Sequence record: OR836606.1
Direction: 5' to 3' (one strand)
Length of the DNA: 64,000 bases
Positions 52,796-55,700 of this stretch are shown here, in pieces. The first letter of the stretch is position 1; each line of letters starts with the position of its first letter. The translations under genes were made by a program, and so were the position numbers. The notes beneath the pieces were generated by a model that did not search any database, was not told the DNA's origin, and saw only the letters and a list, made by a program, of their open reading frames with translations.

Positions 52796-55700
52796 TTAAC
52801 TATGTTTAATGATAGATGAATCTATACAAAATTCATTATCATTAAGTTTTATTACTGGATTACCATAAGTCGTTCTTTTATACGTATTAATTTCTTTTAA
52901 AGGTACATTGATGGTTTTGTTTTCAGTAACTAATAATAAATTATCTTTATCATTACCTACCATACTAATATACATTACAGAATCTTTATCATGTTTAAAT
53001 TTAGCTGCAATAACTCCTTTAATCATTCTAGATTTAACCGGAATATCTTCAGTCATTATTTGTTTAGCTAAACCTTTATGAGTAACTATTAACATCTTCT
53101 CTTGTCCTGAATCAACTACAGTTGAAGCGACTTTATTTTCTTTGTTAATAGTTGTATTACTGAATATAGAAGATCCAATTGTATTTCTATTTTGAACTGG
53201 AATTAATTCACTTGAGAATCTAATAGCGTTACCTTTTTCAGATATAGCTATTAAATTAAACGGTTTCTTAGAATATACATTATGAACATTAATAACTTTA
53301 TCATCTTCATTTAATTTCATAAGAATCACACCAGATTTCTTAATTTCTTCAACCATAACCATTTTAGTTTTATTTAAAGCTGTTGTTACTACAAAAGCTG
53401 TATCTGGATCTTTAAATTCTTCATCAGTTAAAGTAAATGCTTTAATAATCTTTTCATTCTTAACAAATCTACTGATATCTTTACCAAAGTTATTTAGTGA
53501 TTTGATTTCAGGGAATTCATAAACTTTATCATAGAATATTTTTCCGGTATCAGTAATTAAGAATAAGTTATCTTTACTATTAGCATTAAATATATTTAAC
53601 GGTATATCAGTTAACAAAATCTCATAACATTTAAAACATTTTACAATAATATAATTAAATTTAATTAACTTAATTGTGTAGCAGTTTTAAACTGGATTTT
53701 TCGGTTTCTGTACTAAAAACACATTAGCTTAGATCAATTCATTTATAAAGTTATTCCTATTAATTTAATAGAAAGATCTTTATAAATGCTTCACATCAGA
53801 GAACCATTCGATTTTTATAAAATCTAGGGATTAACCTTCCCCAATAAATATTTTCCTTCATTCATTAAATTTATTGCCGCATTGACATCTCTATCAATTT
53901 TATGACCACAAGAACATTTATAAGTTTTAGATTTCCCTATCTTATTTCTTCTTCCACAATTACTACATAATTGAGTCGAAGGGAACCATCTAGAAACTTG
54001 CACTAATTCAGAATTGAAAATATGTTGTTTATATTCTAATTGTCTTTTAACTTCATAGAAACAACTTTCAGCAATTGATTTTCTAATTCCTTTAGTTAAA
54101 TTATTCTTGTCAGCAATCATTTCTCTTACATCTAAATCTTCTAAAGTAATGTATTTATAATTTTTAACTAGAAAAGTAGTAAGTTCATGAACCATATTAG
54201 AACGAATATCTTTAATTCTTTTCCATGTACGTTGATATTTGATTCTCGTATCATTGTAATTTCTAGAATTAGGATTTTTACGTTTCATAATCTGATTATA
54301 AACTTTTGTACGATTATATAATTTCTCAAGCTTATCGATTTGTGAAGAAACTTCAAAACATTCACCATTTGAATCAAAAATAGTTGCGAAGGTTCTTACA
54401 CCTAAATCCACTCCACATATTTCTGCTGATTTGTGAGGAACTTTCTTAGGACGTTTCTTACCTATATCTATACAAAATGAAGCATACCATTTATCTATTT
54501 CTTTAGATATAGTAACTTCTTTAATAACTCCGTCAAATTTAATATCTTCTAATAGAGTTACTTCTGGAGATTTTGATAATTTTAATTTTCTACCATTTAA
54601 TTTAATAGCAGATTCATTTTTCCTATAATATCTACATGATTGAATTGGATCTCTTTTAGATTTAAATTTAGGAAATTTAGATATCTTATGAATTCTAAAA
54701 TTATCAAATGACTTTCCTAAATCAGCTATCGCAGTTTCAAATATCATAGAAGGTCTATCTTTTCTCCATGAAGTTTTTGTATACGGACGAACTATTTCAC
54801 GAACTACTCTTTCATCTGGTAAAAGTTTTCTAATGAATTTCTTAGATTCTTTATCTAATTTATCATCGTTAATCTTTTCAAAATAATTATGCATTTTACA
54901 ATAATTGTATCTCTTATTCCATTTTTCTAATCCTTTATTATAAATCCATCTTCTATAACCAAAATTCTTTTCGAACTCCTTTTTAGAAGGTTCATTTAAT
55001 CTTATCTGAACTTTTTGAGAAATATACATTTTAATGAATTGCACCTCACTTTCATAATTTAATATTACTTTGTTACGAATAAGGTGCGGAAATATTTTTT
55101 TTTATAAAATCTTTTAAATGTTATGAGATCTGAGATTCTCTTTCGAGTCTCATTAAGTAACTAGACTATATCATGATCCATTAAATTAATGGACCCCTCG
55201 CACTTCGGGAAATAAAATTTCCCTACTCTACTCACTTTACTTGATATCTCAATCAAGCTTATTCATCCATTGGATGTGCTTTCGATAGTCGTTGAACGTT
55301 CATCCATCATGTGGATGCTTCGCTGCTAGATTTCCCATTGTTTATAAACCTTAGCGATCTAGGATTTAAACCTAGACTTGTTTTCAGCATAGTTCATCTC
55401 AATCAATTTTTTCTGATTTTCATCGGCATTCACGCTATCCATTACTGGCATACGTTGTAGCTGATTGAGCTTTAGGAGTTTACAAGCAATTCACGAGGTA
55501 TTTTTACCACTATATTACTATAGTAGTGGTGTATGTTGTTTTAGTTAAGTTATAACAAAATTTTTAATATTTTATATTTTGTTATAAAAATATTAACTGT
55601 TAACAAACACCATCTGATAATTTACCAATTGATATACCTTTACCATTTCTCTTTTGAGGTTTACTAACTTCATTTTTAACTTTCTTAATCTTATTTTGTC

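Follow-up and report, generated by a model that had tools for sequence, protein, structure and literature searches.

What is the sequence that interrupts gyrA in Staphylococcus phage LY01, and would the gene be restored by splicing? In the stretch of DNA analyzed here (the window, 64,000 nt of OR836606.1), nucleotide comparison detected a 2,000-nt insert in gyrA on the minus strand, at 55607..53608, without counterpart in four relatives. The reading that we consider likely as a whole, including folding, splicing, and homing, is that the insert belongs to the IS607-related "group B" IStrons and lacks TnpA. IStrons studied so far are from clostridial and Bacillus chromosomes and from clostridial prophage-like phages. 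IStrons on phages have a precedent in Clostridium phages c-st and D-1873 (PMC4227781); for lytic jumbo phages and for Staphylococcus phages, our literature search turned up no description of one. The features of the locus are as follows.

55608..58362, minus strand: gyrA exon 1, ending ...GATGGTG (ORF; Pfam DNA_topoisoIV and Intein_splicing; junction set by intron-less alleles)
53608..55607, minus strand: whole IStron insert, missing from gyrA of PALS_2, MarsHill, Machias, and SA1
55608..55611, minus strand: GGTG, last four bases of exon 1; P1 partner of the internal guide sequence and predicted TnpB target-adjacent motif (TAM) (fold; other insertion sites)
55528..55537, minus strand: internal guide sequence AACAUACACC (minimum-free-energy fold, z = -4.5)
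55141..55532, minus strand: group I ribozyme core, P2-P9 (RF00028; covariation; nhmmer homology to phage introns that match RF00028)
55099..55131, minus strand: 5' arm of the IR stem, directly after P9 (long-range helix)
53824..55029, minus strand: tnpB, 401 aa (Pfam OrfB_IS605, Cas12f1-like TNB, and HTH_OrfB_IS605)
53608..53826, minus strand: guide (omega) RNA scaffold, from the tnpB stop codon to the right end (conserved in four further copies)
53668..53700, minus strand: 5' strand of the guide-RNA terminal stem, the "3' DR" of group B IStrons
53616..53650, minus strand: shared 3' strand, partner of 55131-55099 (intron fold) or 53700-53668 (guide-RNA fold)
53608..53618, minus strand: 3' terminal TTTGTTAACTG, with G53608 as predicted terminal (omega) G and 3' splice site (intron-less alleles)
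53588..53607, minus strand: predicted 20-nt guide, the first bases of exon 2 (scaffold conservation ends at CTG)
52796..53607, minus strand: gyrA exon 2, C-terminal beta-pinwheel domain (Pfam DNA_gyraseA_C)

Boundaries of the insert in gyrA

The boundaries were set by comparison at the DNA level with the intron-less gyrA of PALS_2, MarsHill, Machias, and SA1. The alleles of PALS_2, MarsHill, and SA1 read ...GATGGTG|ATATxCC, and that of Machias reads ...GATGGAG|ATGTGCC. Because these alleles read through, the insert can be placed at 55607..53608, with an ambiguity of 1 nt (G). The element starts with TTTGTTAACAG and finishes with TTTGTTAACTG, and comparison with the four alleles revealed no target-site duplication. 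The junctions of the initial annotation were therefore misplaced by 5 and 7 nt, and its terminal G at 53615 is actually at 53608. Excision in silico, joining 55608 to 53607, mends the gyrA frame and yields an open 3,567-nt ORF; unspliced, exon 1 continues two more codons into the intron, followed by TAA.

A 9-nt repeat, TTTGTTAAC, had been noted at both junctions. It is indeed present in exactly two copies in the window (55607-55599 and 53618-53610), a copy number that is not significant (1.64 expected); their location at both termini is the telling point. Since the intron-less alleles fix the boundaries, this repeat and TTAACTG belong to the ends of the intron itself and not to the exons. Splicing within the repeat was rejected, because its two copies sit in different reading frames and the frame would shift. 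A 3' splice at G53615, which would add two to three codons in frame, was judged less likely because the intron-less alleles, the homologous element L015, Machias, and both orphan cassettes described below put the element end at C(T/A)G. The 3' ends are CTG in all copies and CAG in L015.

Exon 1 holds a LAGLIDADG intein, and the break lies 10 codons past a GyrA-box-like QKRNGKG, in the first blade of the C-terminal domain. Exon 2 is 93.7 to 95.6% identical to S6/MarsHill/SA1-type relatives and about 81% identical to Machias/AH12/PB50. All ten relatives that share exon 2 retain a full gyrA, verified in DNA for four of them; nine sequenced relatives have the empty gyrA site, and gyrA of AR9 has no intron at the LY01 insert position, where the gene is continuous. 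No co-conversion tract was detected beside the insert, with flanks 94 to 97% identical to relatives, like the rest of gyrA; the locus thus bears no trace of a recent homing event that involved a diverged donor. In the sequence record, the two gyrA exons and tnpB are entered as three "hypothetical proteins."

Two predicted folds of the intron RNA

Searched alone, positions 55085-55625 (541 nt) matched RF00028 across the full model (1-253) at 55532..55141 on the minus strand (29.9 bits, E = 9.2e-6), a score that falls short of the family gathering threshold of 50. Rfam searches of the whole window (gathering thresholds) or of 2.6 kb (E-value mode) returned nothing, because the speed filters lose an AT-rich intron with big insertions; the guide-RNA scaffold likewise matched no Rfam family in these two stretches. 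An alignment of 10 sequences resolved P3, P4, P5, P6, and P8, with compensatory change at 31 of 46 pairs. Together, the match and the covariation bear out the full group I core proposed in the initial annotation. Additional, P7.1/P7.2-like hairpins lie between P7 and P3' in the Rfam alignment, from which we infer an IA2-like subclass. P9 is represented by a hairpin at 55151-55132 whose loop is GAAA.

In P1, the internal guide sequence pairs with exon GGUG and the first intron U and then, past a U.U mismatch, with UGUU. This architecture is common to L015, whose own exon GUAG pairs with CUAC, corresponding to GGUG:CACC in LY01. Next to the 5' splice site, LY01 has a U-A pair where L015 has U.G, and U-A at this position could weaken the first splicing step. 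The earlier P10, in which CAGTTAA (55599-55593) was paired with an "exon-2" TTAACTG (53614-53608), was rejected: the two are complementary by sequence, but TTAACTG is intronic, and the pairing is intron with intron. The partner of CAGUUAA is not conserved in L015 and competes with a local hairpin partner (55549-55544). With the actual exon 2 (AUAUACC), P10 reaches at most about 3 bp.

Beginning 1 nt past the P9 hairpin, a long IR stem brackets tnpB and the guide-RNA scaffold. The 18-bp helix reported initially is real and extends further, as 55131-55112 pairs without interruption with 53636-53617 (20 pairs; 31 nt at 90%), and it is 83% AU across the 18 perfect pairs. The stem measures 20 bp in LY01 and L018 and 31 bp in L015; in each case it was matched by 0 of 300 shuffles and finishes 8 to 13 nt short of the 3' end. 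Between LY01 and L015, the stem carries compensatory changes (CAU:AUG versus UGC:GCA).

The same 3' strand can also pair locally. Phage Machias and two copies in the window that lack tnpB conserve the guide-RNA scaffold at 85 to 90%; the omegaRNA of the initial annotation is thus upheld at about 53826..53608, with its end at 53608 and not 53615. Five scaffold copies agree as far as CTG, after which their flanks diverge. The consensus fold comprises 56 pairs, 11 of them with compensatory change, and its terminal stem joins 53700-53668 to 53650-53616, again with compensatory changes among the five copies. Because the IR stem and the terminal stem share this strand, the intron fold and the guide-RNA fold are mutually exclusive. 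As first proposed, one RNA segment pairs either with the strand after P9 or within the guide RNA, and a metagenomic homologue with 69% identity backs both folds through its compensatory changes. Duplex energies are -31.9 kcal/mol for the IR stem versus -12.1 kcal/mol for the terminal stem. The predicted gyrA guide (53588..53607) is identical to the MarsHill intron-less allele at 18 of 20 positions.

TnpB, its predicted targets, and a proposed mechanism

The tnpB previously recognized in the intron was recovered with three Pfam domains at 55029..53824. It is the sole intron ORF; no GIY-YIG, HNH, LAGLIDADG, or His-Cys box endonuclease was found in the intron. In alignment with ISDra2 TnpB structures (8bf8/8exa), the protein keeps the RuvC D-E-D and the zinc-finger cysteines. 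Relative to ISDra2 TnpB, the conserved motifs are GVDLG, TLEDL, and DRDVNAA. We take the catalytic D-E-D to correspond to D191, E278, and D361 of ISDra2. The reported lack of tnpA held for serine recombinases in the window, and a look for a transposase elsewhere in the genome, as the initial annotation had advised, found LY01 not to be among the phage records with a serine-recombinase tnpA match; IS607 TnpA genes did occur in S. aureus Kayvirus. Across the LY01 genome, TnpB matches fall at four places and DNA-level matches at six.

Two orphan cassettes without tnpB lie elsewhere in the window.

4491..4809, plus strand: orphan cassette A, with recoded host-gene 3' end (4491-4513), left end, and scaffold ending CTG; guide from 4810
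2310..2618, plus strand: orphan cassette B, with recoded host-gene 3' end (2310-2326), left end, and scaffold ending CTG; guide from 2619

Directly upstream of each cassette is a GGTG inside the 3' end of its host gene, and one of these two phage genes is a homologue of the annotated holin of MarsHill. All four independent insertion sites of the tnpB/guide family follow GTG, and three follow GGTG (GGTG at gyrA and at cassettes A and B, TGTG at Machias/PB50). Every right end finishes CTG, with C at position -3, unlike the GTG of the targets. We therefore predict that GTG/GGTG is the TnpB TAM. The cassette guides match empty, GGTG-flanked sites in MarsHill at 20/20 positions and further; S6, DC4, Madawaska, and PALS_2 likewise are without both cassettes (the empty sites were read in MarsHill). 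In contrast, the recoded self copies diverge from the guides from position 8 onward, and one motif is mutated to GGCG. Recoding may keep the protein while destroying the self-target. The catalytic residues, the GTG sites, and the cassette guides lend comparative support to the initial proposal that TnpB may serve as the homing endonuclease of the intron and as helper of the orphan cassettes.

Starting from the anatomy and homology of the IStron, its precise insertion site, and the covariation of core, P1, IR stem, and guide RNA, all of which these comparisons demonstrate, we propose the following mechanism. The gyrA pre-mRNA would fold as a group I ribozyme, in which 55537-55528 pairs with exon GGUG and the adjoining intron U as P1. 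The 20-bp IR stem would loop out tnpB and the scaffold so that the terminal ...CUG (G53608) reaches the catalytic core, and splicing would ligate GGUG to AUAUACC and restore gyrA. Alternatively, the same 3' strand would fold locally as the terminal stem of the guide RNA, to be bound and processed by TnpB, with the first 16 to 20 nt of exon 2 as guide; a transcript made into guide RNA would thereby be lost to splicing. TnpB with its guide would cut the GGTG-flanked intron-less gyrA of co-infecting relatives, and recombinational repair would copy the IStron into the cut allele. The IStron's own allele would escape cutting because the right end sets ACTG, not GGTG, beside the target. Both tnpB-less cassettes probably rely on this TnpB as well. 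More tentatively, LY01 may run a one-protein, three-guide drive against co-infecting relatives, built from the gyrA IStron guide and the two cassettes; we regard this extension as possible but doubtful. If true, it would be an OMEGA-based form of "intronless homing" or marker exclusion, acting on uracil-containing DNA and standing beside intron homing by the same TnpB nuclease.

A different history would be that a separate tnpB insertion sequence recently hit an ordinary phage group I intron, without integration of the parts. Machias carries the tnpB and guide-RNA module without an intron (87% nucleotide and 88.8% amino acid identity), its similarity to the LY01 element begins only at the tnpB start codon, and LY01 itself has guide-only cassettes, all as such an accident would leave them. 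The Machias copy has a clean right junction and yields no left end, because its left side is a 375-bp replacement in a PB50 gene. However, the LY01 intron lacks a separate 3' end, and its predicted 3' splice site coincides with the right end of the insertion sequence (...CTG), common to the intron-less copies. Moreover, L015/L016 are 69% identical to LY01 in an alignment that spans core, tnpB, and guide RNA, their IR stem covaries, and the same composite recurs with different sequences in L018 and in Listeria jumbo phage LPJP1. Among viral contigs, an intron core lies just upstream at about 8 of 80 TnpB loci; these loci were detected in a scan from a TnpB alignment, and a scan with a single TnpB sequence gave no matches. 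We consider an accidental nesting improbable.

Another reading is that the element no longer splices, leaving gyrA split or inactivated, with the phage using separate N- and C-terminal polypeptides or the host gyrase. It could draw on the U-A pair in place of U.G beside the 5' splice site, an in-frame TTG at the start of exon 2, and the three separate hypothetical proteins of the record. Yet a split in the first blade of the C-terminal domain would be unlikely to fold; both exons are conserved like the rest of gyrA; core, P1, and IR stem are intact; precise excision gives the frame back; and all relatives sharing exon 2 retain full gyrA. Loss of splicing thus appears the least probable of the alternatives, slightly below the other two. 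Finally, TnpB might be not a homing nuclease but a domesticated RNA-binding factor (splicing regulator or maturase) or a TldR-like transcriptional repressor. TnpB binding represses splicing of a Clostridium botulinum IStron (10.1101/2023.11.20.567912), and, as no transposase is present, excision would leave no empty site for TnpB to re-cut. This role, too, seems unlikely to us: unlike inactivated relatives, LY01 TnpB conserves the RuvC D, E, and D and the zinc finger, and GTG at four sites, together with self copies that differ from the guides (one with GGCG), is the pattern expected of real cutting. 

TnpA-less IStrons with TnpB-driven homing have already been proposed (PMC13565253). LY01 offers an unusually clean natural experiment, with relatives whose gyrA site is empty, one relative carrying an intron-less nuclease module, and two guide-only cassettes; the published idea is therefore directly testable with ordinary phage crosses. 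In addition, the TG core, the U-A junction pair, and uracil DNA, reported to replace thymine in these phages (10.1101/2020.12.14.422802), could gauge drift of the overlapping codes of splice site, recombinase core, and nuclease motif.

Relation to known systems

A related IStron is that of LPJP1 (MZ422438.1; L014:3367-5803, minus strand), an AR9-like jumbo phage of Bacillota. A homologous core (67% nucleotide identity, nhmmer E = 1e-107, with LPJP1 among the four sequences used to build the profile) is followed by a serine-recombinase TnpA and TnpB, in an essential-type gene at codon 2 of groL. Its annotation reads merely "hypothetical protein" and "IS607 family transposase." Unlike LY01, LPJP1 has TnpA, a truncated TnpB frame (33% identical to that of LY01), and a canonical GG core (ATGG| ... 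GCGTGG|) where LY01 has TG. Its IR stem is weak, with 14 bp reached by 20/300 shuffles and so not above them; a pairing of its internal guide sequence with the exon was not convincing by eye and was left out of the evidence. The putative link of LY01 to IS607 relies on this homologue with its serine recombinase.

In published group B IStrons, the exon ends with G and the intron opens with U; the IR stem spans 15 to 34 bp with >80% AU, a 3' DR is present, and ORF-B-only copies occur (Tourasse 2014, PMC4227781). Our comparison set comprised BcISt1 (Bacillus cereus), CbISt1-4 (Clostridium botulinum and phages c-st/D-1873), CsISt1, and CboIStron (Zedaveinyte et al.). Like these, LY01 has a 5' group I intron with P7.1/P7.2-type hairpins, an insertion-sequence part after P9 inside a long AU-rich IR stem, a 3' DR complementary to the 3' IR, and, as in the ORF-B-only copies, ORF B without ORF A; no target duplication extends beyond the core dinucleotide. 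The exon-end G pairs with the C of the internal guide sequence, intron base 1 is U, and a loop or mismatch comes next; at the LY01 junction, exon GGTG, intron U, the G(-1)-C pair, and the U.U mismatch stand beside target TG and a +1 pair U-A, versus U.G in published group B IStrons. The guide RNA crosses the 3' splice site in both, and because it does, splicing and guide maturation exclude each other; the competition has been located at SL5 (10.1101/2023.11.20.567912; PMC13521648). LY01 differs in its TG core (target GGTG, end CTG), where group B has GG (TGGG/AGGG, end CGG), so that its 3' terminus departs from the group B CGG. It obeys the rule that the last two bases of the element equal those of the target (TG/TG), and comparable deviants are CsISt1 (AG/CAG) and L015 (GTAG/ACAG). 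Also unlike group B IStrons, it has a lytic uracil-DNA jumbo phage as host and gyrA as target, and its insertion-sequence module occurs alone (Machias) and as guide-only cassettes, for which the 2014 survey had no example in any IStron.

As with the introns of T4 td/I-TevI, Twort, and SPO1 and the HNH introns annotated in MarsHill, a lytic phage here carries a group I intron within an essential gene for DNA metabolism, the ORF is looped from a peripheral stem, and spread is expected by double-strand-break repair in co-infection. Unlike in these classical introns, its nuclease is the RNA-guided TnpB, with the guide within the intron RNA and overlapping the 3' splice site, and its target specificity would come from exon 2 plus a short motif instead of a long protein-read site. 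Relative to ISDra2 TnpB (PDB 8bf8, 8exa, and 8h1j) and the OMEGA systems of IS200/IS605/IS607, the domain set and catalytic residues are the same, and the guide RNA likewise runs from the tnpB 3' end to the right end and takes its guide from the flank. However, LY01 TnpB is only about 30% identical to that of ISDra2, its G-rich motif is of the GTG type and not TTGAT, and no serine-recombinase TnpA was found in its genome record.

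The interrupted gyrase gene and the boundaries of the insert

The insert in gyrA of Staphylococcus phage LY01 is very likely a group-B-type IStron that lacks TnpA and has two competing RNA folds. By nucleotide search, the element region was found at 100% identity and identical coordinates in LY01 (OR836606.1; 258,897 bp), a jumbo phage with a G+C content of 24%. Its relatives are S6, PALS_2, MarsHill, Madawaska, DC4, SA1, Machias, PB50, and AH12; the Bacillus phages AR9 and PBS1 are more distant ones. Uracil replacing thymine, numerous introns, and an intein within single-exon gyrA have been reported for the MarsHill group (10.1101/2020.12.14.422802). 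Three consecutive ORFs lie on the minus strand of the LY01 locus, all hypothetical proteins in the record annotation, and the second is the tnpB that the initial annotation had placed in the insert:

58362..55600, minus strand: 920-aa ORF with topoisomerase IV/gyrase A and intein domains
55029..53824, minus strand: TnpB, 401 aa, with OrfB_IS605, Cas12f1-like TNB, and HTH_OrfB_IS605 domains
53617..52796, minus strand: 273-aa ORF with gyrase A C-terminal repeats

In PALS_2, MarsHill, Machias, and SA1, gyrA is uninterrupted (one each, 3,552-3,555 nt). Alignment of these intron-less alleles gave the junction ...TCAGATGGTG/ATATACC..., which places the LY01 insert at 55607..53608 and makes it exactly 2,000 nt long, its position being ambiguous by a single G. 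When 55608 was joined to 53607 by script, the result was an open frame of 3,567 nt. The span first proposed, 55612..53615, therefore misses the aligned boundaries by 5 nt on the 5' side and by 7 nt on the 3' side. The repeat TTTGTTAAC (9 nt) noted at both junctions is real and occurs at only two places in the window; however, its copies belong to the insert, one at its very start and one close to its end, rather than to the exons. Splicing inside the repeat was rejected: because the two copies stand in different codon phases, it would shift the frame. Exon 1 also contains an intein with a LAGLIDADG domain (approximately 56878-57969, minus strand; Pfam Intein_splicing, residues 132-495), which the MarsHill-type relatives share; LY01 gyrA thus bears two different self-splicing mobile elements.

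Intron core and predicted competing RNA folds

Rfam searches of the whole window and of 2.6 kb returned no match. When only 55085-55625 was searched, RF00028 matched over its full length (55532..55141; E=9.2e-6), with a score of 29.9 bits, below the gathering score of 50. The conserved part of the intron (approximately 55499..55153) resembles sequences of many phages, and four similar sequences from Klebsiella, Aeromonas, Pseudomonas, and Streptococcus phages matched RF00028 at E=1e-5 to 3e-8. Alignment of 10 tnpB-linked cores predicted P3, P4, P5 with extensions, P6, and P8, with compensatory change in 31 of 46 core pairs; together with the full-length match, this bears out the group I core of the initial annotation. 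P7 (GACUAU/AUAGUC) was invariant among the aligned cores and could not be drawn by the folding program because it crosses P3. Like IA2 introns, the LY01 core has extra hairpins between P7 and P3', and its P9 hairpin (55151-55132) carries a GAAA loop.

In the minimum-energy fold of the LY01 5' region (z=-4.5), ACACC is paired with exon GGUG and intron U(+1); a U.U mismatch, a UGUU:AACA pairing, and P2 come next. The related element on metagenomic contig L015 folds equivalently with its own exon (GUAG:CUAC, U(+1).G). Since each element pairs its own exon, the internal guide sequence tracks the exon of its element. These models provide good evidence that the 5' splice site would be recognized after a G in both, a peculiarity published for group B IStrons (PMC4227781; PMC13565253). 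At +1, LY01 has a U-A pair where L015 has U.G, and the U-A pair is possibly a weakness.

The long-range helix described initially as 18 bp proved longer, with 20 contiguous pairs, or 31 nt at 90%. This IR stem (55131-55112 with 53636-53617) was reached by none of 300 shuffles. It begins one base past P9 and stops 8 nt short of the 3' terminal G, so that tnpB and the guide RNA scaffold would be looped out and the 3' splice site brought to the core. Comparable stems are present in L015 (31 bp) and in contig L018 (20 bp, unrelated in sequence), stopping 8-13 nt ahead of the element end, and two-strand changes between LY01 and L015 preserve pairing (for example, CAU:AUG to UGC:GCA).

The guide RNA consensus, built from five copies (LY01 gyrA, two LY01 cassettes, Machias, and L015), contains 56 pairs, 11 with compensatory change. 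In both the consensus and the single-sequence fold, the terminal stem of the guide RNA forms between 53700-53668 and 53650-53616. Because one 3' strand is common to the IR and terminal stems, they are mutually exclusive, as had been proposed, and each helix has compensatory changes. Duplex energies favor the intron fold over the guide RNA stem in LY01 (-31.9 versus -12.1 kcal/mol) and in L015 (-40.6 versus -17.1 kcal/mol). However, the terminal stem is a local helix, unlike the IR stem, and TnpB would stabilize it. The LY01 IStron likely splices, since the phage is viable, the break falls inside the first C-terminal-domain blade of GyrA, and the ribozyme parts are all intact.

TnpB, insertion motif, and guide-only cassettes

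LY01 TnpB aligned with ISDra2 TnpB structures (E=1e-27) and retains all three RuvC acidic residues and the zinc-finger cysteines. Besides the gyrA copy, LY01 carries two tnpB-less cassettes, each comprising a guide RNA scaffold, a left part of approximately 110 nt, and the 3'-terminal bases of a tnpB ORF:

2310-2618, plus strand: cassette B
4491-4809, plus strand: cassette A

In all copies the scaffold ends in ...GAGATTTT, 4-5 variable bases, and CTG. Sequences past CTG are unrelated between copies, which puts the predicted guide of the gyrA copy at the start of exon 2.

Empty insertion sites (slash, insertion point)
gyrA, intron-less alleles: GATGGTG/
Cassette A, MarsHill: TTAGGTG/
Cassette B, MarsHill: CAAGGTG/
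Machias copy, PB50: AAATGTG/

GTG precedes all four independent insertion sites (GGTG in three), and the right end is always CTG. The C at position -3 of that end would spare the occupied allele, and GTG versus CTG parallels TGGG versus CGG of published elements. The last two target bases equal the last two element bases (TG in LY01, AG in L015, GG in the Listeria phage LPJP1), as a serine-recombinase crossover core would leave. The gyrA guide matches intron-less MarsHill gyrA at 18 of 20 positions (mismatches at 14 and 17) and matches PALS_2, SA1, and Machias less well.

Both cassettes were absent from the five relatives examined (DC4, S6, MarsHill, Madawaska, and PALS_2). Each sits within the 3' end of a phage gene, straight after GGTG; one host gene is a homologue of the annotated MarsHill holin. 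Each opens with a diverged, recoded second copy of the gene end that it displaced: ...QGGTLPH-stop versus ...QGGTLPNQ-stop in cassette B, with synonymous changes and the motif now GGCG, and ...GGGSGGDL-stop versus ...GGGSAEDQSN-stop in cassette A. The cassette guides match the MarsHill empty sites perfectly and are mismatched to the duplicates from position 8 on. Cassette scaffolds share 85-90% identity with the scaffold of the gyrA TnpB and are unlike the region downstream of a second TnpB in the window, a resemblance that makes the gyrA TnpB the likely partner of both. It is plausible, from sequence, that this TnpB drives homing into gyrA of relatives and maintains the cassettes.

The second TnpB (380 aa; 62341-63483, minus strand) is intergenic and shares 37% identity with the gyrA TnpB and 41% with that of the LPJP1 IStron. 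No intron core was found upstream of it, and a guide RNA of its own could lie in the approximately 340 nt downstream. Altogether, TnpB occurs at four places in the LY01 record, at least one beyond the window. A perfect 14-nt direct repeat, AGATTTTATAAAAA (RNA strand), brackets the gyrA tnpB ORF, with one copy after the 5' IR arm (55099-55112) and the other across the tnpB stop codon (53812-53825). Recombination between them would remove tnpB and keep the core and guide RNA, a product resembling the ORF-less BcISt1 copies of Tourasse et al. (PMC4227781).

Related elements and known IStrons

The L015/L016 element, which interrupts a DNA-ligase-like gene, is 69% identical to that of LY01 across core, tnpB, and guide RNA (TnpB, 64%), and contigs L018/L019 carry another such composite. 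In the Listeria jumbo phage LPJP1, a serine-recombinase TnpA and then a truncated TnpB are encoded downstream of a homologous core. Among fetched viral-contig TnpB loci, a core lies directly upstream in approximately 8 of 80. Judged from these sequences, LY01 is not alone in carrying the composite. The LPJP1 IStron (MZ422438.1; 3367-5803 of our L014 extract, minus strand) is a complete, unannotated IS607-type element inserted at groL codon 2 (ATGG/ ... GCGTGG/AAAAG); four places in that record resemble the LY01 intron. Five IMG/VR contigs (L079, L083, L089, L090, and L095) represent a different viral intron-tnpB class, in which the long-range helix closes right after the tnpB stop codon, leaving the guide RNA region outside the loop.

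Machias has a tnpB-guide RNA module without intron in place of 375 bp of a gene retained by PB50 (L002:2467-3945 versus L007:968-1342); the PB50 gene is intact, small, and lipoprotein-like. The right junction is clean (TGTG/GATTCC); the left side represents a deletion or replacement, which leaves this copy with no recognizable left end. No free-living IStron components were found in a 2014 survey (PMC4227781). The initial annotation had noted no tnpA, and no serine tnpA was detected in LY01, in either the window or the phage record. Eight Kayvirus-type Staphylococcus phages (S. aureus hosts) encode an IS607 serine-recombinase TnpA, 49% identical to that of the LPJP1 IStron in seven and 38% in VL10; such a TnpA might serve in trans as the transposase of elements that lack one, in phages sharing these hosts.

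The LY01 layout agrees with the "5' IR / 3' DR / 3' IR" arrangement of Tourasse et al. (PMC4227781), and its folds agree with Sternberg-lab experiments in which SL5 stability sets splicing versus guide function (10.1101/2023.11.20.567912; PMC13521648). IStrons in phages have already been described for c-st and D-1873 of Clostridium (PMC4227781). The element type, G-ending exon, IR stem, fold competition, and homing idea for TnpA-less copies are already published, and the LY01 IStron is of interest mainly as a test system. New relative to known systems are the host (a lytic jumbo phage of Staphylococcus with uracil-DNA), gyrA as the target gene, the TG core, and the coexistence of free modules and recoded guide-only cassettes with an IStron.
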